Positions 9,285 through 62,157 of a DNA stretch of 64,000 nucleotides are shown here, piece by piece. Position 1 is the first letter of the stretch. Each line of letters opens with the position of its first letter. The notes under the pieces are model-generated. The model was given only the letters and a program-made list of their open reading frames with translations, had not been told where the DNA came from and did not search any database. The stretch lies in IMG/VR virus record IMGVR_UViG_3300025161_000004, positions 62,001-126,000 of that record. The stretch is one strand, 5' to 3'. A program made the position numbers and the translations under genes.

Positions 9285-12284
9285 TTATGTTGTATTGATA
9301 ATATTTAATAAATCATTTTTATTATTTTTTACTTTATCAGAATATACTGAAATTAACATACTTTTTAATGCATCACCTAACTTTTTACCTGACATACCCA
9401 TGTTTAAAAGATCATTACCTGTAATAACTAAATCTTTATAACTTTTTGGATATTTACCAGTTTTTAATTCTTCTGTTGCCATTAATAATTTCTTAGGGAG
9501 AATTTTGCTGTTAAGTGACGCAGGATATATTGTGTACATATTATGAGCGACAATCCTATTTTTAATTGGATTATTTGTTACATTATTAAATCCTGTCTGT
9601 AATGCAAGGATTTCCTTATATGTTGATATATCACCCTTTAAAATATTTTTATAAAACTCTGCTGGATTTTCTTGAACTGGTGATGCTAATAGATAAATAT
9701 ATTCACCCATAGTTTTAACTTCATTCCATGCATTCAAATCCCAATGATCTTCAAAACCTTCAGGAGATTTTGCACCAAATATTTGTTCATATAATCCAGT
9801 TTCTCTTAATAGATCAGCACCATACAACACATCACCCTTTTTTACTATCTTATCAAGTTCAGTTAATATTCTTTCTGCTGGTATTTCTTTTATCCTATGA
9901 GCATTTTGTTTTATTAATTCCATTGTTTTTTCTTCGATCATAAATCCTTCAAATCTTGCTGCGAATTGTACTGCTCTAAGCATACGAAGCGGATCATCTG
10001 AAAATGCCTTTGGATTAACCACTCTAATGATTTTATTTTTTAAATCTTCTTGTCCACCATATGGATCAACAATATCACCAGAAGCACTTTTAGCGATTGC
10101 ATTAATAGTAAAATCTCTTCTCTCTAAATCTTTTTCTATTGGCAATGAATGATCTGAGGCTATTTCAAATCCTTTATGTCCACCCTTACCAGTCGCTCTT
10201 TCTGTTCTTGGAATTGCGATATCGATCTCTTCTGATGAACCTTCTGGTTTAAATTTTAGTATACCAAATGATTTACCAACAGCATTAACTCTACCGTATT
10301 TCGATAATAATTTTTCTAAATTTTCTAATGATATACCAGTAATTAATACATCAAGGTCTTTAGAATCTTTACCTAAAAACTCATCTCTAACTGCACCACC
10401 AACAGAATATAACTTACCACCAAGATTTTCAATTTCTTGCTTAAATGGTAAATCATTTATGTCATTAATACTTATTGCTTCATTTATATTATTGCTATTT
10501 GGGGCAACATAATGATCATAATACATTTCTAGTTGTCTTTCATTATAAAAGTAGCGCACATTCTCAGGCTTATAGTTTACCATTTCACGACCTTTAATTA
10601 TTACTCCGTCATAACCAAGTTTCATCATTTTTTCTGAAATAGAATTAACATCTCTACTATCAGGATATGTCTTACCTTTTGCTTTAGATATTGGAAATAC
10701 TATGTTATTTTGAAACCAAATTTCCCAATCATTTAATGTATTAAATACTTTAGGATTTTTTGGTTTGGCGTTCACTAACATAACAAGTTTACCATATTTT
10801 CTTGCCATACTTTTATTTGATGCTGGCACACTATATAATCCTCTACCAAGTATTGCCATTCCATTATTCTCACCGTTAACTGCATTATCTGAGATACCTC
10901 TATATGTTACGTTCTCTCTTTTCCATTTCTTATATTCTAAATCACTATTTTCTCTTATAGGTCTCAATTTTAAATTTGAAATATCTCCTTGATTACATGC
11001 ATCACTTGTACCATCTGATTTACCTGCTAATTTACAATTTCTTTTAACTTCTACAGACGTACTATTTGGCATATATGTCATTTTTCTTTCGAATACAGGT
11101 TCTGAATCTTTCAGATACATTCGCATTTCTCTAATAACATATTCTTTAATTTTAGAGTAGTATGATTTATATACATTATCATCTAAACCATAATCAATTA
11201 ATATTACGGCAGGTTTTCCATTCCTTATTGATATACCATACGACGATCTAGCAACTAAATCACCTACAGGCATATCAGCATCATCCATTAATTGTTTTAT
11301 AACTTTAGCAAATGAATTTGGAGACTTACTATTTTGAAATGCTTCGTATTCTTCAGGTGTTACTGCTTGTTTCCATTCTTGATTGTATTTTTCACTAGTT
11401 AAAAATACACCAAAAGTTCTAAAACTATAACCTTCAATTTCTTTAAATTTTTCTTCACTAATTTTTGAAGCATATTCGGATATTATCCAAATAAAATCAG
11501 GATCAAAATCAAACACTTGAGCCACTGCATCTGCATAGTATTTATCAGTACCAATTTCGGCTTCTAAAAAATTTTGACCTAAACCCTTACTATTTTTTGC
11601 TAATTTTATAACCTTTTTATTATCAATTTTGAAAACAATTCTACTACTACCTTCACCCAATAATTTCAACTTATTTTTTAAATAAAAAATTTTACCCTTG
11701 TATGTTTTTATTTTTTTTAAATCTTCAACACTAAATGGTTTATCCGCTATTTTATTTTCATTTTCAACAACACCATCAGTTGACATATATAAAGATGAAC
11801 CATTTTCATTAATACCTAAACTATTCAAATAATTTTTTAACATCATTAACTTTTCATAAAACATTGGTTCGTTATTAGATAATGCAATAGCTTTTTTTAT
11901 ATTATGTTTGATAATAGAATAATGCTTATATAAAACATCTTTACTAAATTCAGCATAGTCTGATATAGATTCAATAAATGAAACACTTTTTTTTATCTGA
12001 CTAAGATTAACACCCTTTATTAAATTTTCTGTTACTTTTAAAGGTTCGATTGCCCATAAATCATGATCATCGGATGGTGGTTCTATATTTCGAAGCTGAT
12101 CTTCTTTATTCATATCACGTAATTCGTCTGTCGGTGCTACACTATTGTAGTAGTCTGATGAATCTAATAAATTCTCCAACGACAGTTCAGTAGCTTCATT
12201 AATATCATTATTTTTTTCTAATTCGATTTCTATACCTTTCAATAGGATTTCTTTAGGGGTTTGTTTTGTGCTTTTTTGTAACAT
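9285..12284 (-). CDS. Multidomain protein: kinase-like domain, ART-like domain and C-terminal class II CCA-adding (tRNA nucleotidyltransferase) domain
   Basis: Kinase-like 'LGEGSSRIVF..VIKLA..N..E...GDL...LIDYG'; ART-like 'YRG...GRGLYS...GYDGVII'; nucleotidyltransferase 'VGGAVRD....KDLDV', 'DLERRDFTINA', 'DDPLRMLRAVQFAARF', 'ERI'. Confidence 0.85.
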   Translation of the reverse strand: MLQKSTKQTPKEILLKGIEIELEKNNDINEATELSLENLLDSSDYYNSVAPTDELRDMNKEDQLRNIEPPSDDHDLWAIEPLKVTENLIKGVNLSQIKKSVSFIESISDYAEFSKDVLYKHYSIIKHNIKKAIALSNNEPMFYEKLMMLKNYLNSLGINENGSSLYMSTDGVVENENKIADKPFSVEDLKKIKTYKGKIFYLKNKLKLLGEGSSRIVFKIDNKKVIKLAKNSKGLGQNFLEAEIGTDKYYADAVAQVFDFDPDFIWIISEYASKISEEKFKEIEGYSFRTFGVFLTSEKYNQEWKQAVTPEEYEAFQNSKSPNSFAKVIKQLMDDADMPVGDLVARSSYGISIRNGKPAVILIDYGLDDNVYKSYYSKIKEYVIREMRMYLKDSEPVFERKMTYMPNSTSVEVKRNCKLAGKSDGTSDACNQGDISNLKLRPIRENSDLEYKKWKRENVTYRGISDNAVNGENNGMAILGRGLYSVPASNKSMARKYGKLVMLVNAKPKNPKVFNTLNDWEIWFQNNIVFPISKAKGKTYPDSRDVNSISEKMMKLGYDGVIIKGREMVNYKPENVRYFYNERQLEMYYDHYVAPNSNNINEAISINDINDLPFKQEIENLGGKLYSVGGAVRDEFLGKDSKDLDVLITGISLENLEKLLSKYGRVNAVGKSFGILKFKPEGSSEEIDIAIPRTERATGKGGHKGFEIASDHSLPIEKDLERRDFTINAIAKSASGDIVDPYGGQEDLKNKIIRVVNPKAFSDDPLRMLRAVQFAARFEGFMIEEKTMELIKQNAHRIKEIPAERILTELDKIVKKGDVLYGADLLRETGLYEQIFGAKSPEGFEDHWDLNAWNEVKTMGEYIYLLASPVQENPAEFYKNILKGDISTYKEILALQTGFNNVTNNPIKNRIVAHNMYTIYPASLNSKILPKKLLMATEELKTGKYPKSYKDLVITGNDLLNMGMSGKKLGDALKSMLISVYSDKVKNNKNDLLNIINTT

Positions 12285-12300
12285 AATTTAATCTTTTTTT

Positions 12301-12334
12301 AAAAAAAAAGCTCACAGCATTAACCATGAGCTTT
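12301..12334 (-). terminator. Terminator-like hairpin
   Basis: AAAGCTCA-N12-TGAGCTTTTTTTTT. Confidence 0.55.
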
Positions 12335-12357: not shown

Positions 12358-13089
12358 TTAAGCACCTTTTCTTTTTTTTCTTTCTTGTAATTCTTTAATT
12401 GTTTTCAAAACACCCTCTCTAATCATACCATCAATATCCAATTCCAACAAAACTGCCTTCACTCGTTCTTTTGAATAAATTTCAATTATAGTATTTTTTA
12501 TTGCATTTTCAAGAATCACACCCACATTTTCATTTATATATTTGTTAAATATTCTATCAATCTCTTCATTAATATATTTCGTACTAATTTGACCGATTAT
12601 TGATTGTGAATTATCTGTGGTAGGTTGTTTTACTTGTTGTTTACCATAATATTGTTCAACTAAGTGACTAACATCCGATACACCATTTTGAAATTTTTTA
12701 ACAAGATCTTTGCTTTGCTGTTCCATTTTTCTAGACATTAATTCCTCTCTATCCACTTCAATCGATTCAGAAACATTTCTTGATTCGTATCCACGATTAA
12801 CAGATGTATCGTTAATTAATGAATATATATTTTCAGAGGAAAAATCTATTGTGTTTTTTTTCTTGATTCCAGTAGGTTTTTTTTCCTCTGCCAATTGTTC
12901 TACAATTTGCATTTTTTTAACCGCATTATTTGGTTTTCCTGTATTAAGTGATGTTATTAAATCTCTTAAAAACATATCACCACTTTTTGGAACTGTAATT
13001 TGTGTATCATTAGAATTGATGACTTGTGACTGACTTTTCCTTTTATCAATCTCTTCACGTATTTTTTTTATATCAAATCCTTTACTCAT
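12358..13089 (-). CDS. Hypothetical protein (243 aa)
   Basis: ORF preceded by a GTATTTATA motif at 13114-13123. Confidence 0.7.
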   Translation of the reverse strand: MSKGFDIKKIREEIDKRKSQSQVINSNDTQITVPKSGDMFLRDLITSLNTGKPNNAVKKMQIVEQLAEEKKPTGIKKKNTIDFSSENIYSLINDTSVNRGYESRNVSESIEVDREELMSRKMEQQSKDLVKKFQNGVSDVSHLVEQYYGKQQVKQPTTDNSQSIIGQISTKYINEEIDRIFNKYINENVGVILENAIKNTIIEIYSKERVKAVLLELDIDGMIREGVLKTIKELQERKKRKGA

Positions 13090-14228: not shown

Positions 14229-15107
14229 CTATACATTTAATTTTGTTAAGGCGTTGCTTACATAAAGCACTAAATTTGGCACAGTATCAATATATTCCAT
14301 TTCAGGAATACTATACCAACCATAAGCAGTATTCTCATTATTTAATTGAATATCATATAAATCACCATTATAAAATGCTGTAAAAACATGTAATTTTGAA
14401 TTAGGTAAATCAACCACAAACGATTTATTGAAATTATCTAATTCAAGTCCTGTTTCTTCCCAAACCTCTCTTTTTATTGCATCTTCTGGTTTTTCACCAT
14501 CTTCGACACCACCACCAACTAAAGCCCATTTATCTGGCATCCATTGGTCTTTTTCTGGTGATCTTTTAGCCAGCAAAACATTACCATCAGTATTATAAAT
14601 GACAGCAATAACATTATGCTTTATTCCCTTAGTTATTTCTCCAATAAATCCATCAACTTCCTCATTTATTCTATAATCTACAATATCAGCAATAAAATGA
14701 TTTTCAGATTTATAATCCTCGGTCATTTTTAAACTCAAATCCACAATACCTGATTGTGCACCTAAAGTATGGATACCAGTAGTTTTTTTTACATCAACTC
14801 CTTGTCTGTTTTTTGATGATAATTCAGTTCTTTTTCTCTCATTACTTAATGTTCTTTCAACCCATATTTTCATATCATCACCACCAGATAATTCATATTG
14901 TTCAGGTGTATTTTTTTTACTATTATAATGGTCGAAAAAATTCTTTAAACCCTTTAACATTTGATATGTACAATAACCATTTTTAACTAAGAATTTAGCT
15001 CTTTTAATCCCATCAGAATTATCATCTGCATTATAAATTAACACATTTAGCTTTTTAATGATTGAATGTGGTACTTTATATTTTTTATTGTAAAGTTGTG
15101 AGTTCAT
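14229..15107 (-). CDS. NUDIX hydrolase with an N-terminal domain of unknown function
   Basis: Nudix box 'GGGVEDGEKPEDAIKREVWEETGL'. Confidence 0.85.
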   Translation of the reverse strand: MNSQLYNKKYKVPHSIIKKLNVLIYNADDNSDGIKRAKFLVKNGYCTYQMLKGLKNFFDHYNSKKNTPEQYELSGGDDMKIWVERTLSNERKRTELSSKNRQGVDVKKTTGIHTLGAQSGIVDLSLKMTEDYKSENHFIADIVDYRINEEVDGFIGEITKGIKHNVIAVIYNTDGNVLLAKRSPEKDQWMPDKWALVGGGVEDGEKPEDAIKREVWEETGLELDNFNKSFVVDLPNSKLHVFTAFYNGDLYDIQLNNENTAYGWYSIPEMEYIDTVPNLVLYVSNALTKLNV

Positions 15108-19486: not shown

Positions 19487-19840
19487 TTAATTACGTACGA
19501 TTGTTAATTTCTTATTTTTGGGATTGTAAATATAATCAATATTGTTATGTTTATATGTTAAACTATCTTTTAATTGATTAGGATATTTAGGATATACACC
19601 AATTAACCAAAGACTCGTTATTAAATTATTACCTCTTATTGTTAAACAATCACCACTTTTATCAAACTTAATGTCAACATTAAAAAGTAAATAATCATCA
19701 TCAGATGAAACTTTATCATATAGAAATTGATAACATTTTATTAATAATTGTTCTTGTACAGATGGTTTCTCCATATCAAGAAGTAAATATTCAACAAATA
19801 TATCACTCAAACTATTATAAACTTTTGGTTTATCGAACAT
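19487..19840 (-). CDS. Hypothetical protein (117 aa)
   Basis: Overlaps the helicase stop; lies between helicase and polymerase. Confidence 0.7.
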   Translation of the reverse strand: MFDKPKVYNSLSDIFVEYLLLDMEKPSVQEQLLIKCYQFLYDKVSSDDDYLLFNVDIKFDKSGDCLTIRGNNLITSLWLIGVYPKYPNQLKDSLTYKHNNIDYIYNPKNKKLTIVRN

Positions 19841-22667
19841 ATTTTTTCTTCAAACTTCCAATTAAATCATTTAAGATAGACTCGGACACCTTAGACTGAA
19901 AATCTACATTGTCAATTGCTTTCGATATTTCTTTCCTTTTATTTTCAATAAGCTCAAATACCTTTTCGTCAATAGTTCCCATTAATTGAGGTATATAAAT
20001 GGTAACATTATTTTTTTGACCTATTCGATGGCAATTATGAACAGTTGATAACCCAACAACAAAAGAATGATCATCTTCAACAGTAAGATCATATACTCTT
20101 TCATTACCACGTTTTAATCTAACGATTTCAATTTTTGCTATTGAAAATAATAAATTGCCATTATCGTTTATTATAAATTTATTTTTTGTTGTCATATCAT
20201 TTAAACCATATTCAAGAGACCAAGATGAGTATCTTTTATTTGAATTATTTTGTTTTATTCTTGGTATATTACCAATTAATGACTCTAATAAAATTATTTG
20301 ATATGACAAATATTTAGATATTCTGCTTACTTGTTGCGAACCCTTTCTTTTATACCCATTAGTACTATAAATACCATCTAATAATGATTTAATCAAATCA
20401 TGTTTTAAATTAAAAAGTAATTCGGGTATTTTTTTATTTTTTGCAGTTTCACCAAACAAAAATTCAAAAACATCTCTTAAATCTTTAGAAAATATTGTAT
20501 ATACCACATATTTTTTATCTGACTTAAAATATTTATCATATGTGCTATTCAAACCAAAACTATCACTAATATATTCAATACACCTTTTAACTTCTAAATC
20601 TTCATCAATACGACCACTTATACAAACAGAATTTTCATTCACCCAACCATCACCAATAAATCTACCCATAGCATACAATAATTTATTATCCAATTTAATA
20701 TTTCTGTTTACGAATTTTAAATCACATCCTATTTTTTCTTCTATATAATCAATATTAAACTCATTTAAAGTATTATTTCCTATGTTCAATTTTGATAATA
20801 CAATCATATGATCAAATATATTAATATTTGATGCCTCAACCCATTCGTATGATTTTTTTATTTTATCATATACATATAATTTGTGATCTTGAGTACAAGA
20901 CAATGGTAAATGATATCCTTTGTAGTATATTTTATATAATGCTTTTTTCTTTTCTAATTTAGATTTAACATCAAGCACTTTTTTCCAATTACCTTTATGC
21001 GTATAGACTAAATCACCTATTTTAATATTTTCAATTTTTTTATATCCGTCATTTTTGGTCAACACTAATTGACCACTTAATATACATCTATCACTAACCT
21101 GATCATACTCACCAACACTAAATGGGAGTGTAATTATAAAAATTTTATTTGATGCTGTCAATGTCAAACCATAACTACATGTTTGTATTGAACCTAAAAA
21201 TAATTTTAAATCACTATTAGGATCTTGAAATTTACTTACAATAGTATTTCTTTCTTCAACAGATTGATCACCTGTATGTACTGCCGATATTGTCGGAAAC
21301 AATTTATTAATCTCATATAGATTTTCTTTGAACATATCAATAACTACAATTTTTTCATCTTCCTCAACTAATCTCTCAAGTAATTCTGCTACCATTTTAA
21401 TTTTTTGTTTTGCAGTATATTGTCTCAATCTAATTAAAACAGTTAATGGATTTAATTGTGTTTGATGTATATTACCGAAGATTATCTCCTCAACCACACC
21501 CTTCTCTATCTCTTTATACTCATCCAATTGATTTTTATCCATCTCAATGAATATTTTTTGATATATCTTATCTGGTAAATCTAGTACTTCTTCTTTTCTT
21601 TTCCTATAGGTATAAGCAGATAGTTTATTATAGAGTTCATCTAATTTAGGCAAATTATTTGTTTCCCAAGTCATTAACTCTGTATTGAATACCATTCCAC
21701 AATAATACTCAAAAAAATGTTTTTTTGTAGCAAACTCTATTGGTGATATTTGATTTAATGTAGTATATAATTCGTAAATTCTATTCGGTGCTGGTGTACC
21801 AGATAAAAACACTTTATGTTCAACTTTCTTAAATAACTTCTTAAAATTTTTGTAAGTGTTTGATTTGCTATTTTTTAACTTATGTGATTCATCGCAAATA
21901 ACACATTTTGGTATAAAATCTAAACCTAAATTTTTTAACTTATTTTTAATATTATCACTATTGCTCTTGTTAAAAAATTCATAGTTAAAAATAATGTATT
22001 TAGATTCTTCAATACTATATTCATTATTTTTATTACCTATGATATATGCTTTTGAATCAGTAAATTTTTTTATTTCATTAAAATAATTAAACTTAAGACT
22101 ATTTGGTGTGATAACAAATACTTTATCAAAACCCTTCATCTCAACAAATGCAATACTCACTAATGTTTTTCCTAGTCCCATTTCAAATGAAATCAATGCA
22201 CTGCCAACATATTCAAGAAATAACGCAGCTACAATTTGATGATTAAATAAAGTAACTCCGTTCTTTAAATTTTTTAAGACCTTATCCGCATATTGTTGTG
22301 GATTTTGCTCGTATTCTTTTTTAAATTTTATAGCTAAATCATTTTTTTCAAGCTGATTTTTTAATTCAAGAATTTTCTTTTTGGCTTTTTCATCTTCTTT
22401 TCGGGTAAGATTAATAAATTCTTTTTTATTTTCTTCACCCATGAAATCAAAAAATATTATCTTAGAATTACGATATGCTAAAATAACACTAAATAATCCT
22501 GCGGGGCTAATTTCCCATGCCTTTTGGGATGGATTCCAAGATCTTTGCTTGATAGGCAAGCTCTTTATTTTTTCAACTAATTGCTTATTATAGGGAAATC
22601 TGACATAATATTTGTTTGTATTGGGTACTTTTTCACAAAGTACAATGAATCGGGTATCTGAAGTCAT
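19830..22667 (-). CDS. SNF2-family (SF2) helicase with N-terminal HARP-like domain and an intein
   Basis: 'FPYN..LVEKIK......WNP..KAW' HARP-like; 'EMGLGKT', 'DESH', 'LSGTP', 'GLTLT'; motif VI 'QVSDR^CHRIGQ' split by an intein. Confidence 0.9.
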   Translation of the reverse strand: MTSDTRFIVLCEKVPNTNKYYVRFPYNKQLVEKIKSLPIKQRSWNPSQKAWEISPAGLFSVILAYRNSKIIFFDFMGEENKKEFINLTRKEDEKAKKKILELKNQLEKNDLAIKFKKEYEQNPQQYADKVLKNLKNGVTLFNHQIVAALFLEYVGSALISFEMGLGKTLVSIAFVEMKGFDKVFVITPNSLKFNYFNEIKKFTDSKAYIIGNKNNEYSIEESKYIIFNYEFFNKSNSDNIKNKLKNLGLDFIPKCVICDESHKLKNSKSNTYKNFKKLFKKVEHKVFLSGTPAPNRIYELYTTLNQISPIEFATKKHFFEYYCGMVFNTELMTWETNNLPKLDELYNKLSAYTYRKRKEEVLDLPDKIYQKIFIEMDKNQLDEYKEIEKGVVEEIIFGNIHQTQLNPLTVLIRLRQYTAKQKIKMVAELLERLVEEDEKIVVIDMFKENLYEINKLFPTISAVHTGDQSVEERNTIVSKFQDPNSDLKLFLGSIQTCSYGLTLTASNKIFIITLPFSVGEYDQVSDRCILSGQLVLTKNDGYKKIENIKIGDLVYTHKGNWKKVLDVKSKLEKKKALYKIYYKGYHLPLSCTQDHKLYVYDKIKKSYEWVEASNINIFDHMIVLSKLNIGNNTLNEFNIDYIEEKIGCDLKFVNRNIKLDNKLLYAMGRFIGDGWVNENSVCISGRIDEDLEVKRCIEYISDSFGLNSTYDKYFKSDKKYVVYTIFSKDLRDVFEFLFGETAKNKKIPELLFNLKHDLIKSLLDGIYSTNGYKRKGSQQVSRISKYLSYQIILLESLIGNIPRIKQNNSNKRYSSWSLEYGLNDMTTKNKFIINDNGNLLFSIAKIEIVRLKRGNERVYDLTVEDDHSFVVGLSTVHNCHRIGQKNNVTIYIPQLMGTIDEKVFELIENKRKEISKAIDNVDFQSKVSESILNDLIGSLKKKYVR
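20034..21086 (-). mobile_element. Intein (351 aa) with LAGLIDADG homing-endonuclease domain
   Basis: Starts 'CILSGQLVLT'; block B 'CTQDHKL'; 'GRFIGDGW' and 'LDGIYSTNG' endonuclease blocks; ends 'VYDLTVEDDHSF.....VHN' followed by Cys+1. Removal restores helicase motif VI. Confidence 0.92.
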
Positions 22668-25191: not shown

Positions 25192-27051
25192 TTATTGCAA
25201 TGTATTCTTCTTTTTAATCAATATTGTTGGGTTTGGTCTTGTGTTAGTAGTACCAGCAAGTCCAGCTCTAAATACTACTAAATCAAGTCTTGTTCCTGAT
25301 GTTAATGATACTACAACACTTGGTAATGCGAGATTGCCAACGCTATCTGCTCTCGATGTATTTTCTGCAGCAAATGTTCTATTTATTACGGTTGTATTAT
25401 TAATAACAATATTACTACCATATGATCTCACATTATTATTACCTGTATGTATTATTGGAATATTATATGTGATTTCATAATCACCAGTTTGGTTAACAAA
25501 TATCCCACTACCACCAGTCCAAGAAAATAGCGTGGATGATTTTAATTGACCATTCCAAACAATGGGTGTCGGTGTGATCGTATTAATATCAATTCCTGTT
25601 GTTCCTGTTCTAATTAAATAAATCTCATCTGATTTAGTTGTTGCAGTATAACCAGTAAATACATTGATACTAAGTTTTGTATTATCTAATCCAGAAGTTA
25701 TACCCGATATATATGCAATATCACTCTCAATATTATCTAAACGTGTATCAGTTGATGCTGTATATACATTAAAATCTAAATTATTAAGTTTTGTGTTAGT
25801 GATTCCAGAGATATATGTAATATCATCTTCTATACCTCCTAATCTAATTTCTGTTGTAGCGGTATATGAATTAAATAATAATTCGTCTACTTTTGAATTA
25901 AGTACTACACCTAAAGTACCACCAGTAACCTCAACATTTAATTGAGAACCATCCCAATCTAAATTATCGCCAGCTATTGCAGCACCATCAAGAGATATTA
26001 AATTACCAGATATATTAATACCAACACCAAATGTATATGAATTAGCTGCACTAAATTGAACCCAATTAATTGGGTCGATATTAATATTTACAATACCATC
26101 CCAATCTATAACCCAACCACTTGATCCATTGGTATTTCCCGTCTCAACAAATACAAATACACCACCAGATATCTCATTTGAAGGTATACCATCCATGTCT
26201 GCCGATCTATACCATACACCAGAAGATATAACTACATAGATACCGTTTTGTTGTGGTGATAGTTGATTTTTAACCAATACTCTATCTCCATTAACTAATG
26301 TTACACCATCGATTGATGTTGGTGCTGATGTAAACGCACCTGTCCCAGCAGTACCACCAGTTACAATATAAACTGCTCCAGTTAAATCCGAAACAGTTGC
26401 AACACGAACCGATTCTTTTGGATCAAGACCTGCCGAAATGGAATCGATATATGTTTTAGTTGCTGCACTATAAGCATTAAAATTACTTATCTTTAATCTT
26501 GCCGCAGTTTCACCAGATAAATAATTTATATTATCCTCAATAGCTGAAATTTTTATGTTTGTTGTTGCAGTATATGCTGTGAAAACTTCAATTGAGGTTG
26601 CACCACTAATTCCAGTTAATAAATCATTAATATCATAACCCGAATCAATTAATGTAGTACCACTCGCACCAAAAATTGGAACATTACCAGTTATAGCACC
26701 GAATACTTTATCTAATTTACCTGCGGTTTGCCCTGAAAGATAATCAATATCGTTATTTACGTTACTAAATTCTATTTGAGTTGTAGCAGTATAACCAGTG
26801 AATGTTTGATAATCTAATGGTGAATCAGGAGAAGGTGGATTAATGAAATTTAACCAATTATTAATGTTGGTTTCTGTATTTGGAATTACGTCACTTGGTA
26901 GTGATACTCTCCATAGATAGAGTGGTTGATTTACTGGAATGACAAAATCTGTAAATAATGCTGCTTCATTTCCTGTTGAATCATTAACAGCTGATTCTCT
27001 TACGATTGTATTACCATAATCAGTACGATATATTAGATATCTAAATGTCAT
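25192..27051 (-). CDS. Fibre/decoration-like virion protein
   Basis: 'F..YTATT...I.YLSG.T' heptad repeats; 'GLDPKESVRVAT...DRVLVKNQ....QNGIY' module typical of phage fibre proteins; C1q-like beta C-terminus. Confidence 0.7.
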   Translation of the reverse strand: MTFRYLIYRTDYGNTIVRESAVNDSTGNEAALFTDFVIPVNQPLYLWRVSLPSDVIPNTETNINNWLNFINPPSPDSPLDYQTFTGYTATTQIEFSNVNNDIDYLSGQTAGKLDKVFGAITGNVPIFGASGTTLIDSGYDINDLLTGISGATSIEVFTAYTATTNIKISAIEDNINYLSGETAARLKISNFNAYSAATKTYIDSISAGLDPKESVRVATVSDLTGAVYIVTGGTAGTGAFTSAPTSIDGVTLVNGDRVLVKNQLSPQQNGIYVVISSGVWYRSADMDGIPSNEISGGVFVFVETGNTNGSSGWVIDWDGIVNINIDPINWVQFSAANSYTFGVGINISGNLISLDGAAIAGDNLDWDGSQLNVEVTGGTLGVVLNSKVDELLFNSYTATTEIRLGGIEDDITYISGITNTKLNNLDFNVYTASTDTRLDNIESDIAYISGITSGLDNTKLSINVFTGYTATTKSDEIYLIRTGTTGIDINTITPTPIVWNGQLKSSTLFSWTGGSGIFVNQTGDYEITYNIPIIHTGNNNVRSYGSNIVINNTTVINRTFAAENTSRADSVGNLALPSVVVSLTSGTRLDLVVFRAGLAGTTNTRPNPTILIKKKNTLQ

Positions 27052-31888: not shown

Positions 31889-33928
31889 TTAACTATTCCT
31901 TAATTCCATAGCACCAGTTGTTGCCGTTTGATAGTTGCTTATGTATACTTTATATTCAATTCCTGACCATAATACTGTTGTTACACTCACTAAATCAAAA
32001 TTAGGAAATAAATTACCTGAAGGAGTGACAGCACCACCAATTGATCCGTTATTTAATGCATTAACGTACCATACAGTTTTGCTTGTTGATGTAGATGGTA
32101 TTGCAAACCATAAATAATCATCTGATGTTGCTCCGAATGTTATTGTGATCGTACCCATTGATGATGCAACTACTTTAGTACCACCAGAAACTAATGCACT
32201 TGTTGCTGTTGGTCTATTATCACCTGGGGCAGCACCACCTGAAGCAACTTTACCATAAAAATATGGATATATACCAGTAATTGTTACAGATTGATTTCCT
32301 GTCGTACCAGATGGTAATGGTGTTAAATATGGATTACCAGAACTATCATATGGTTGAGTACCTGCATCATAAGTAACAGACGATTGCCAAGTATTTGAAC
32401 CTGATAATACGGTATAACCAGTTACAGTTTGTGTATCTGTTAATGATGTAGATAGTACTGATGATGGTAATCCAGTACCTATATAATTATATCTGTTCGG
32501 TAAACCACTTCTAAATGCATCTGGACTTGAATACTGTGGTGACTTACTACCTCTATTAAATGTTGCAATAAATGATATGTTTATAGTACTACCAACTTCA
32601 AATATTGTACCTGATGGCGATGTTTTACTAAAAGTATTCGATGGATTAGTGAGTGTAGGGAATAATGTAGGTACAAGCAAGTCTTGAATTATCTGACTTA
32701 AAGTTTTACCAGTCAATACATAACCAGCATTTATACCACCTAAACTTATTGATGCTGGCGATATACCTTCGTATATGGTGCTTGCTGTTAAGCCAGTTGC
32801 TGTTACTTCAAATTCAATATTATCACCATTATCTGTAATAGTAATTCCATTACCAGCAACTAATGATTTAAAATATCCAGTATTCGAACTAACCCCTGAA
32901 AGTACATTAACACCAGTACCAACGTTTTGTAAATTTTGAATTCCACTAAAAGGTATGGAAAATGGTGACCATAAAATAGGATCAACATTAATAGTTACAA
33001 CACTTGGAGATGTTACCATCCAAGCAGTATTTCCTAATGTATTACCGCTTAAAACAGATACAAACGAACCAGTATTGATTTCACCAGCAGCATCAAAATC
33101 AGTTGCTCTTGTAAATAATTGAGTGCCTGAATTATAAGTATATATACCGTTTTGTGATGGTGTTGTTTGATTTTTAATTAAAACTCTCCAACCGTTCAAA
33201 ACAGGAATTCCATCTAAAATTCCTGATGTAAATGGAGATGTTAAATTTATATTACCATCAGTATCAGTAGTTGAAACATTAACAGGAGTTTTAGGTATTA
33301 ACCCTGCGGCTAAACTATCCACATACTCTTTATCGACAAGAGATCTATTTGAATACGTTGAATGATAATTTCCACCATATTCAATACCTCTTTTTATAAT
33401 ACTATTGTCTCTTACAAAAAAGTCTGAAGTACCACCCGTTATTGTAATATCAATACTTCCTTTAGCAGTATATCCACTTAATTCTACTGCAATTCTATTA
33501 AGTGTGAGTTGTGTTGAACTTATACCACGACCAGCAGTTAATTGATCTTGTTTACCTGTTGTGATTCCAGATATGTATGTAATATCAGAATGAATATCAT
33601 TAATTACTGATTCTGTTGAAGCACTAAATGTTTGTAAATCTACTATATCTCCCTCAATATTCTGAAGTCTTGTTTCAGTAGCTGCAGTGTATGCTGTAAA
33701 TAATGTAGTATCAAATTGTTTAGGCACTAAATCGCTATTAGTGACACCATTCTTATACCAATATTCAACTCCTAAAATATTTACTGTTAAACCAGTATGT
33801 CTAATCGTTATTGGTATTTCGCTATTAACCTGTGCAACAGAATCATATGGTACACCATTCCTTAGATATTTACTATCTGCTGGAAGTGGGTTTATAACTT
33901 TAAGACCGAAAGGTAATTCTAAACTCAT
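31889..33928 (-). CDS. Fibre/decoration-like virion protein (679 aa)
   Basis: Shares modules with 30851..31873, 25192..27051, 27078..28103 and 33930..34931. Confidence 0.7.
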   Translation of the reverse strand: MSLELPFGLKVINPLPADSKYLRNGVPYDSVAQVNSEIPITIRHTGLTVNILGVEYWYKNGVTNSDLVPKQFDTTLFTAYTAATETRLQNIEGDIVDLQTFSASTESVINDIHSDITYISGITTGKQDQLTAGRGISSTQLTLNRIAVELSGYTAKGSIDITITGGTSDFFVRDNSIIKRGIEYGGNYHSTYSNRSLVDKEYVDSLAAGLIPKTPVNVSTTDTDGNINLTSPFTSGILDGIPVLNGWRVLIKNQTTPSQNGIYTYNSGTQLFTRATDFDAAGEINTGSFVSVLSGNTLGNTAWMVTSPSVVTINVDPILWSPFSIPFSGIQNLQNVGTGVNVLSGVSSNTGYFKSLVAGNGITITDNGDNIEFEVTATGLTASTIYEGISPASISLGGINAGYVLTGKTLSQIIQDLLVPTLFPTLTNPSNTFSKTSPSGTIFEVGSTINISFIATFNRGSKSPQYSSPDAFRSGLPNRYNYIGTGLPSSVLSTSLTDTQTVTGYTVLSGSNTWQSSVTYDAGTQPYDSSGNPYLTPLPSGTTGNQSVTITGIYPYFYGKVASGGAAPGDNRPTATSALVSGGTKVVASSMGTITITFGATSDDYLWFAIPSTSTSKTVWYVNALNNGSIGGAVTPSGNLFPNFDLVSVTTVLWSGIEYKVYISNYQTATTGAMELRNS

Positions 33929-40751: not shown

Positions 40752-40868
40752 ATGTCTTCAAATTAAAACCACCTATTTTAATTTTTTAATAGGAATATAC
40801 AAGTTCGATTTTTTTAATTGGTTATAACTTAAAATTTGAATCAAAAATCGTAACTTCATTATATATAG

Positions 40869-40941
40869 TAGCGAGAGCAGGATTCGAACCTGCGATCTTG
40901 TGGTTATGAGCCACACTAGTTAACCGCTTCTCTATCTCGCA
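40869..40941 (-). tRNA. tRNA-Met (CAT), initiator-like, no encoded CCA
   Basis: Cloverleaf: acceptor TGCGAGA/TCTCGCT with 1:72 mismatch, anticodon arm TGTGG-CTCATAA-CCACA, T arm GCAGG-TTCGAAT-CCTGC; 3' end ACTA; weak D stem. Confidence 0.85.
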
Positions 40942-61440: not shown

Positions 61441-62157
61441 TTATATTTTTACAGGTAATTCATCAGCATATTGTGTTACAAATTGTTGTCTATTTTGTTC
61501 CCACTGTTGATTGGTTATGCCAATAGAATGGTGCGTTATTCTTATATCAGTAATAACACCAATATTACACCCATCAAGATAATTAGGAAAACAAAATGAT
61601 AAATCATAAAAATGAAATCCTCTATAGGTTTCATCAAATGGGTGTTCAATATCTTCAGGGTCTACTGCCATGAATAACCCATCGATTACAACTACTGGTT
61701 TTACTCCAAAATGTGGATTACTGTATTTACTTTCCCACTTACGAACACCATTATCATGATTTACTATTCCAATCATTTTAGAAAAATTCATATTTTTACC
61801 TGTTGCATCTAACCACCAACAACCATGAGAATTTAACTCGGTTGTACCTGCAACACCAATAATTTGGTAATTATTGTTTCGTCTATTAAAATGGTTTAAT
61901 AAAATTTTACCCCAATCTTTAGTATCAAACTCAATATCATTATGGCAGAACACAAAAACAGCATCTTTCTTATCTAATTCATTTAGGGCTTTGTTATAAA
62001 CTTCAGTTAATGAATATTGGTTATAGTTTTCATATGGGTGAATACTGAATTCAAAACTATTAGATATACCAATGGTTTTATATATGTGATCATTGAACTT
62101 ATTATTAAATGCTTGTCCAAGATGAGAGCTATAAATCACACGGATTATGGATTTCAT
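61441..62157 (-). CDS. Glycosyltransferase-like (GT-A) protein
   Basis: 'YN.A....VFCHNDI', 'IIGVAG', 'IDGLFMA', 'FHFYDL', 'H.S.G'. Confidence 0.75.
   Translation of the reverse strand: MKSIIRVIYSSHLGQAFNNKFNDHIYKTIGISNSFEFSIHPYENYNQYSLTEVYNKALNELDKKDAVFVFCHNDIEFDTKDWGKILLNHFNRRNNNYQIIGVAGTTELNSHGCWWLDATGKNMNFSKMIGIVNHDNGVRKWESKYSNPHFGVKPVVVIDGLFMAVDPEDIEHPFDETYRGFHFYDLSFCFPNYLDGCNIGVITDIRITHHSIGITNQQWEQNRQQFVTQYADELPVKI

Follow-up and report, generated by a model that had tools for sequence, protein, structure and literature searches.

A polyvalent protein of a T4-like jumbo phage with kinase-like, ADP-ribosyltransferase-like and CCA-adding modules and candidate prohead-protease sites at its module borders

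The polyvalent proteins of phages and conjugative elements are predicted to be delivered with the invading DNA (Iyer, Burroughs, Anand, de Souza and Aravind, 2017; PMC5512222). They would be the first phage weapons in the cell. Here we describe P0001, a 999-residue protein encoded in a stretch of 64,000 nucleotides (nt) from the IMG/VR virus record IMGVR_UViG_3300025161_000004 (positions 62,001 to 126,000 of that record; hereafter the window). In it kinase-like, ADP-ribosyltransferase (ART)-like and CCA-adding modules are joined with two further modules in one open reading frame (ORF) of a viral contig. Since its relatives display the shuffled module repertoire described for polyvalent proteins (PMC5512222), P0001 probably belongs to this class. 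We hold it to be somewhat probable that P0001 is packaged in the phage head, cut at the junctions between its modules and injected with the DNA.

The likeness to the described polyvalent proteins lies in the presence of ART, truncated Ser/Thr/Tyr-type kinase, GNAT, 2H, NUDIX, lysozyme, Zeta toxin and RadC domains and in their heavy shuffling (PMC5512222). However, the CCA-adding enzyme, a recurrent module here, has no mention in that survey. Further, an in-cis MPTase peptidase was proposed for polyvalent proteins (PMC5512222), whereas P0001 has no peptidase domain and instead carries prohead-protease-type sites at its junctions. Unlike the named polyvalent domains, its kinase-like module (K) and ART-like module (X) score below the Pfam thresholds of Kinase-PolyVal and ART-PolyVal, and its cassette L is in none of the libraries searched.

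In T4 the prohead protease gp21 cuts after L/I-X-E and trims the packaged ART Alt at both ends (PMC9026906). Alt and IPI-III resemble the case proposed here in that a packaged ART is trimmed by gp21 after L/I-X-E and injected, and the T4-like genome studied here encodes a gp21 homologue. Alt, however, is a single enzyme trimmed at its ends only, whereas the sites in P0001 would separate five modules; P0001 lacks an N-terminus like the T4 capsid-targeting sequence; and the ART of P0001 would be of the ART-PolyVal lineage, as against the Alt/Mod lineage in T4. In phiKZ and SPN3US many head-internal proteins are cut after the Glu of a three-residue motif by gp21-like proteases and are then ejected (PMC9026906, PMC10052503). 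These substrates are not homologous to P0001 and their motif is a different one. Proteases of the phiKZ/SPN3US type prefer S/A/G-X-E, and [AGS]xE is depleted at the junctions of the P0001 family. Lastly, jumbo phages have stand-alone CCA-adding enzymes, which are taken to serve in RNA repair (PMC7824862); those of phrog_2244 (PBECO4-like phages, CcrColossus and Aeromonas phage 65) are the same class II enzyme, each encoded by a gene of its own of about 250-420 aa.

Polyvalent proteins, phage CCA-adding enzymes and gp21-type processing are already known separately. What appears to be new is the CCA-adding enzyme as a recurrent polyvalent module, the junction motifs implying processing in trans by the head protease, and cassette L together with a partner gene rich in [IL]xE.

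Five modules in one open reading frame

The IMG/VR viral contig of which the window is part comes from hot-spring sediment and comprises 246,768 bp (28.5% G+C, ~79% complete by estimate). Judging from its genes for a baseplate wedge, a family-B DNA polymerase and a DnaB-like helicase, the relatives of its prohead protease and its 36 tRNA genes, the phage is a distant T4-like jumbo myovirus; the nearest cultured relatives of the protease are in Microcystis, Flavobacterium and T4-type phages. An earlier note on this DNA described P0001 as a fusion of three catalytic modules, namely a kinase-like domain (11730-11150), an ART-like domain (10920-10500) and an intact class II CCA-adding domain (about 10450-9285), in a 999-residue ORF. 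The single uninterrupted minus-strand ORF and all three folds hold, with confident AlphaFold2 models for the first two domains and a full-length enzyme with all head motifs for the third. Nevertheless, there are five modules in all, as the N-domain and cassette L had been missed. In BLAST comparisons with relatives the chain breaks up at the borders that the note had drawn. The gene and its modules are:

9285..12284, minus strand: gene for the 999-residue polyvalent protein P0001, a single ORF from ATG to TAA with no interruption
12141..12266, minus strand: degenerate DUF5661-like segment, residues 7-48 (PF18905 at 13.7 bits, E 0.08, below the cut-off)
11814..12140, minus strand: helical N-domain, residues 49-157, found otherwise only in P0002 and P0017, with no informative fold match
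11151..11732, minus strand: module K, a truncated protein-kinase-like domain, residues 185-378 (alignment invariants, AlphaFold2, structure searches)
10950..11087, minus strand: cassette L, 46 residues, 400-445, with the pattern R..YMP.S..V.VK..C.L.G....TS.ACNQGD I.NL.L..I-R-E
10515..10928, minus strand: module X, a divergent ART-PolyVal-like ADP-ribosyltransferase fold, residues 453-590 (AlphaFold2, Foldseek, VIA, BFVD, hhalign)
9294..10460, minus strand: full-length class II CCA-adding enzyme (head, neck, body, tail), residues 609-997 (Pfam, phrog, NF009814)

That so long an ORF is an assembly or gene-calling artefact joining separate genes is exceedingly improbable. The syntenic phage L005, in which the CCA module is a separate 681-residue gene beside that of a 1185-residue K-L protein, might be cited in its favour; however, four relatives (P0002, P0004, P0010 and P0016) share the fused order of P0001, and no stop codon interrupts the 3 kb in spite of the low G+C content of the genome. 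Gene calling yields an identical protein on 7 contigs of several samples, and near-identical DNA is present in several hot-spring, sediment and soil metagenomes (four public runs), so the fusion is not an assembly accident. The stretch is also covered, at 99-100% identity, by contigs of further hot-spring and soil runs, and in the strain that matches no indel breaks the frame. A run labelled RNA contributes two short contigs (~380 nt in total, 99% identical) that lie over the CCA head region only (window 10011-10391); these could reflect transcription or carried-over DNA and are not proof of transcription.

The CCA-adding module is recognized by Pfam as PolyA_pol (625-754, 6e-23), PolyA_pol_RNAbd (780-836) and tRNA_NucTran2_2 (947-994), by PDB CCA-adding enzymes at 1e-28 and by phrog_2244 at 7.8e-67. 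The Bacillus-type CCA model NF009814 matches with 162 bits, below its equivalog cut-off of 290, over 13-391 of its 396 positions, and the CCA models outscore those for PcnB (107 bits) and A-adding enzymes (81 bits). Its motifs GGAVRD/DLD, RRD and DDPLRMLR line up with those of 6ibp. Stand-alone phage CCA-adding enzymes are 27-42% identical to the module over head and neck, and none of the 507 phage records with a P0001 match covers more than 37% of P0001.

ARAGORN finds the 36 tRNA genes in the 247-kb record to be nearly all without an encoded 3' CCA, and the enzyme may equally serve these tRNAs of the phage. It might even be, whatever the entry route of the protein, that the module is mainly a housekeeping one that adds CCA to the phage's own tRNAs and has no part in counter-defence. 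We regard this as doubtful: while it agrees with the CCA-less tRNA genes and with the complete, conventional build of the enzyme with all its head motifs, the hosts own a CCA-adding enzyme, and the fused, perhaps pre-delivered copy together with 2H, HAD_SAK_1 and NUDIX as neighbours or fusion partners points to the end-healing of damaged RNA. The two roles are not mutually exclusive. The tRNA genes at G000:C1:187555-231505, outside the window, include one with a CUA anticodon (amber suppressor-type; 230500-230572) and three for tRNA-Cys; one tRNA-Met lies in the window (40868-40941, minus strand).

Module K spans ~195 residues and has no match in Pfam or NCBIfam, though phrog_4301 matches it. 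In a 48-sequence alignment its invariant positions are G212, R215, K227, N231, E241, D342 and D364-x-G366. These correspond to the glycine loop (G210-x-G212-x-x-R215 in P0001), the VAIK-type Lys (K227), the helix-C Glu (E241), the catalytic-loop Asp (D342) and the DFG-like motif (D364-Y-G366) of kinases. The AlphaFold2 model has a predicted local distance difference test (pLDDT) value of 89.8. Foldseek retrieves APH(2''), ULK1 and PknB with it at about 1e-4, and VIA retrieves MPS1, ULK1 and PRPK with Z of 8-9.6, over a span limited to the kinase N-lobe through the DFG motif; in the ESM Atlas the matches are RIO1/ABC1/Pkinase clusters with TM scores of about 0.5. What is present is a kinase fold that has lost the C-terminal subdomain while keeping the G-loop, the Lys, the Glu and both Asp residues. 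Kinases without the C-lobe were described in polyvalent proteins by Iyer et al. (PMC5512222); K is predicted to be a truncated kinase of this kind and to have kinase activity.

For module X, whose AlphaFold2 model has a pLDDT of 85.3, every structural neighbour is an ART. In the PDB, Foldseek finds the AcrIF11-like 6kyf, an anti-CRISPR entry, at E 2.8e-3, and further matches from Foldseek and VIA comprise cholix toxin, exotoxin A, diphtheria toxin, PARPs, MbcT and ParT. Among viral models (BFVD) the best match is a capsid-protease/MuF fusion at 2.8e-5, followed by many ART-PolyVal proteins, and the ESM Atlas search likewise returns ARTs. AcrIF11 and the MuF-fused ART-PolyVal domains, both phage ARTs aimed at host or defence proteins, are its nearest structural neighbours; in sequence they differ from it by an identity of 13-22% and by the R that X has in place of H in the first NAD-binding motif. 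When X is compared by hhalign with ART-PolyVal segments from relatives, E is 2.3e-5 (probability 76%), and the motifs of X and ART-PolyVal are in register as YRG/YHG, GLY[ST]/GxYF and RE/GE. The invariant positions of the alignment are R462-G463, Y484, Y497, G557-x-D-G and G565-R-E567, with Y484 and E567 among them. From the structural neighbours, the profile comparison and the motif register, X is therefore predicted to be a divergent ART-PolyVal-like domain, with R for the first-motif H, and to have ART activity. A structural match to the cyanophage A4 pre-ejectosome was kept as a weak lead because the paper on it makes no mention of an ART domain.

The remaining modules are less informative as to fold. 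For the N-terminal 175 residues the ESM Atlas returned only generic helical (TPR-like) matches with TM scores below 0.5. The DUF5661-like segment has lost the family's EHT/DHL residues, and its counterpart in the orthologue P0017 reaches 38 bits. A 166-residue paralogue encoded outside the window (G000:C1:214795-215295, plus strand) has an intact DUF5661 at its C-terminus (50 bits), with TATAAATA 51 nt upstream of the gene. Cassette L is a conserved two-Cys element with hydrophobic-x-E on both of its flanks. Of 159 relatives 59 carry it, as a rule in a single copy and in many cases at the very C-terminal end, and the genome has one copy. It has no Pfam or PDB match, the profile reaching only chance-level scores against the PDB (Cas12g and L33, E about 0.2), and a word-indexed search with the cassette alone returned only the query. 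We consider it a candidate loading or cleavage cassette.

Modules K and X account for 2,207 cluster representatives that match residues 1-620 of P0001. The relatives range from 165 to 5,166 residues, those with a single module being of 165-230 residues, and K and X occur in every order. In 29 large relatives they are joined by CCA (12), 2H (7, plus LigT and Acb1), ART-PolyVal (6) and GNAT (6) domains, as well as by SAM lyase, RadC, lysozymes, Zeta toxin, Topo I and NT5C. A NUDIX domain is fused to module X in P0006 and P0014; the gene of the latter follows a terminase gene and a 930-residue gene, which, like the capsid-protease/MuF fusion matched by X, hints at a link to the virion. Of the 159 proteins 27 have the CCA module, namely P0001 and 26 others. 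No paralogues of the P0001 modules were found elsewhere in its own genome.

Motifs at the module borders and the prohead protease

The linkers of P0001 had been noted to contain four sites of the I-x-E type, namely GINE (157-160), VIRE (383-386), PIRE (442-445) and NINE (599-602). All four are present, and they lie exactly at the module borders as defined by homology. The third of them is the I-R-E (443-445) that closes cassette L; the others are:

11805..11813, minus strand: junction I-N-E, residues 158-160, invariant in the three proteins with the N-domain
11127..11135, minus strand: junction I-R-E, residues 384-386, at the module border after K; a further V-F-E at 397-399 opens L
10479..10487, minus strand: junction I-N-E, residues 600-602, 27 residues before GGAVRD

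To place the motif in the relatives, the edges of K and X were set with hidden Markov models of the cores, and the flanks were taken as twenty residues. An [IL]xE is found in 168 of 235 such flanks (71%) as against 24% of random windows of the same proteins, and shuffling within the flanks leaves 68.5 +/- 6.4 flanks with the motif. In the same flanks none of the control motifs [IL]xD, [IL]xK, [IL]xQ, [AGS]xE and [IL]E exceeds the background. The junction logo has I/L at P3, mostly N at P2 and E at P1, and the Glu occupies near-fixed offsets of -9 before X, -7 before K and +10 after K. Similarly, inspection of the flanks shows a hydrophobic-x-E ~27 residues before GGxVRD in nearly all CCA modules of relatives (about 24 of 26). 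The motif is kept while the linker sequence around it varies, and in the AlphaFold2 models the segments at the K-C, X-N and X-C junctions have lower confidence (block means 45-73) than the module cores. What appears significant is the placement of the sites and its conservation in about 150 relatives, rather than their number.

The genome encodes an intact Peptidase_S77 protein, that is, a T4 gp21-type prohead protease, with the match at G000:C1:164412-164888 (77 bits; phrog_207 at 4e-41) inside a gene at 164316-165023 (L002:1405-2112), which in an alignment to T4 gp21 (5jbl) keeps the His and Ser positions. As P0001 has no peptidase domain of its own, its processing would be in trans by this head protease. 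A complex prediction for the protease with the junction peptide 588-616 scored 0.01, which speaks neither for nor against cleavage.

Under the proposed mechanism the polyprotein would be incorporated in the core of the prohead, perhaps with the aid of the 243-residue protein encoded directly upstream, of cassette L or of both. A T4-type prohead protease would then cut after the Glu at each junction, and the released fragments, of about 15, 26, 7, 18 and 44 kDa, would remain inside the capsid until they pass into the cell along with the DNA. Once injected, the kinase and the ART would modify host proteins or defence components, for which Alt, AcrIF11 and the T7 kinase provide precedents as host-modifying phage enzymes. 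The CCA-adding enzyme would rebuild the 3' ends both of host tRNAs damaged by defence nucleases and of the phage's own CCA-less tRNAs. If this is true, a hydrophobic-x-Glu at module borders together with a head protease explains how chains of 1000-5000 residues are delivered as small enzymes, and tRNA 3'-end repair joins the activities injected with the DNA, which bears on phage escape from tRNA-targeting immunity.

The alternative is that P0001 is a cytoplasmic, uncleaved multidomain enzyme which is expressed along with the replication-proximal genes and, as a single chain, combines tRNA 3'-end maturation or repair with host modification, and that [IL]-x-E is no protease site but a structural signature of the helical linkers that travel with each mobile module. 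We think this unlikely on the whole, although a good part of the evidence agrees with it and weighs against delivery from the head. Shuffles of P0001 give 13.7 +/- 3.3 [IL]-x-E, so that its overall count of 15 is at chance. As the flanks share ancestry, the motif counts are of sequences and not of independent events, and the motif could simply reflect the build of helical linkers. In the genome, P0001 is encoded within a conserved block that starts at the DNA polymerase and includes the NUDIX, 2H-like and HAD_SAK_1 genes; in three phages the locus starts downstream of the polymerase gene, outside the head module, a replication-proximal position that would also be in keeping with a cytoplasmic enzyme of the early or middle phase. 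The earlier note had the gene follow a late-type motif, and this did not survive scrutiny: there is no TATAAATA of the T4-type late promoter on the sense strand within 12 kb upstream of P0001, the motif shows no enrichment in the window (35 as against 26.9 +/- 5.3), and a terminator-like hairpin stands directly upstream of the gene. The N-terminus is not of the T4 capsid-targeting type either, for the T4 capsid-targeting sequence (CTS) is MKTYQEFIAE (PMC8442874), whereas P0001 starts MLQKSTKQ... and no ORF of the genome starts M(x)TYxEF. Moreover, jumbo phages commonly carry CCA-adding enzymes as stand-alone genes for RNA repair in the cytoplasm (PMC7824862).

The assignments of K and X likewise have points against them. 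P0001 has no match to Kinase-PolyVal (PF18762), which detects one of 48 relatives at E 0.044, nor to ART-PolyVal (PF18760), which weakly detects 7 of 50 module-X relatives with a best E of 0.0018. The structural scores are moderate for K (Z up to 9.6) and modest for X (VIA Z up to 6.5, Foldseek E from 3e-3), and R462 of X stands in place of the first-motif H (R-Y-E against the H-Y-E of the family). A tblastn search of residues 1-620 against 50,697 deposited phage records returned only three weak matches, all to K (XacN1 and Alishewanella phages), and no proteome-characterized or cultured relative was found among these records. A megablast search of deposited phages gave no match.

Against the uncleaved enzyme stands the specificity of the motif, which requires E, is depleted in its D, K and Q variants and has I/L, not A/G/S, at P3. 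It is placed at near-fixed offsets outside the confident cores, is kept amid variable linkers and fits the specificity of the protease family encoded in the same genome. Moreover, relatives of 2000-5000 residues have up to a dozen unrelated activities, which makes a single working chain hard to rationalize. Beyond the delivery of P0001 itself, we suggest tentatively, as possible if somewhat short of probable, that in one clade of T4-like jumbo phages the prohead protease has been recruited as the processor of modular effector delivery. In such a system the modules would come with their own cut sites on either flank, L and the upstream protein would load the chain into the prohead core, and the RNA-repair cargo (the CCA-adding enzyme, with 2H in relatives) would be at hand ahead of all phage gene expression and so pre-empt tRNA-targeting defences.

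Among the relatives, 28 of 159 start with the CTS-like M-T-Y-x-E-F (P0044, P0052, P0066, P0149 and others). This is a lead only, as the first helix of module K may account for these residues: where the N-terminal copies of the module read M-T-Y-x-E-F, internal ones read D-Y-P-x-S-F.

The polyvalent locus and its neighbours

The P0001 locus runs from the DNA polymerase gene towards the baseplate genes, with these features around the polyvalent gene:

14229..15107, minus strand: NUDIX hydrolase gene, a member of the conserved locus
12358..13089, minus strand: 243-residue gene directly upstream, rich in [IL]-x-E (12 sites against 3.8 expected, z 4.6)
12307..12334, minus strand: intrinsic-terminator-like hairpin with a 12-bp stem and a T-run, after the upstream gene and ending 22 nt before the ATG of P0001
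6834-7214, minus strand: 126-residue 2H/tRNA_lig_CPD-like gene (weak tRNA_lig_CPD match, 22 bits), conserved in L005
6263-6829, minus strand: 188-residue HAD_SAK_1 gene, conserved in L005

There is no recognizable promoter between the hairpin and the ATG. The [IL]xE excess of the 243-residue protein is the joint highest in the genome, and its orthologues, which in L005 and L008 are also encoded directly upstream of the polyvalent gene, have comparable numbers (11 against 3.7 and 12 against 3.7). A scaffold-like acidic protein beside the prohead protease has 17 such motifs against 8.2. Both observations fit the cleavage reading. The 243-residue protein may be a protease-degraded, scaffold-like core or an adaptor partner of the polyvalent protein. 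The junction motif, cassette L and this partner gene would provide simple markers for packaged effectors in uncultured phages.

The order of the locus, namely DNA polymerase, NUDIX, three small genes, the polyvalent gene, the 2H-like gene and HAD_SAK_1, is the same in the window and in L005, and is kept in L008 up to the polyvalent gene. The polyvalent gene itself encodes 999 residues in the window and 2,332 in L008, while in L005 it is represented by the 1,185-residue K-L protein and a separate 681-residue CCA-2H gene. The locus is conserved in position and variable in content. The 2H-like and HAD_SAK_1 neighbours, together with the CCA-2H fusions in relatives, suggest a theme of RNA end-healing.

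Elsewhere in the window, paralogous proteins of 619 residues (25192-27051, minus strand) and 679 residues (31889-33928, minus strand) match head-decoration or Ig-like virion proteins, and a TATAAATA lies 31 nt upstream of the 619-residue gene. A 945-residue protein (19830-22667, minus strand) has the unusual combination of a match to the phrog_62 helicase (67-533) and a match to a large-subunit family of anaerobic ribonucleotide reductase (527-919).

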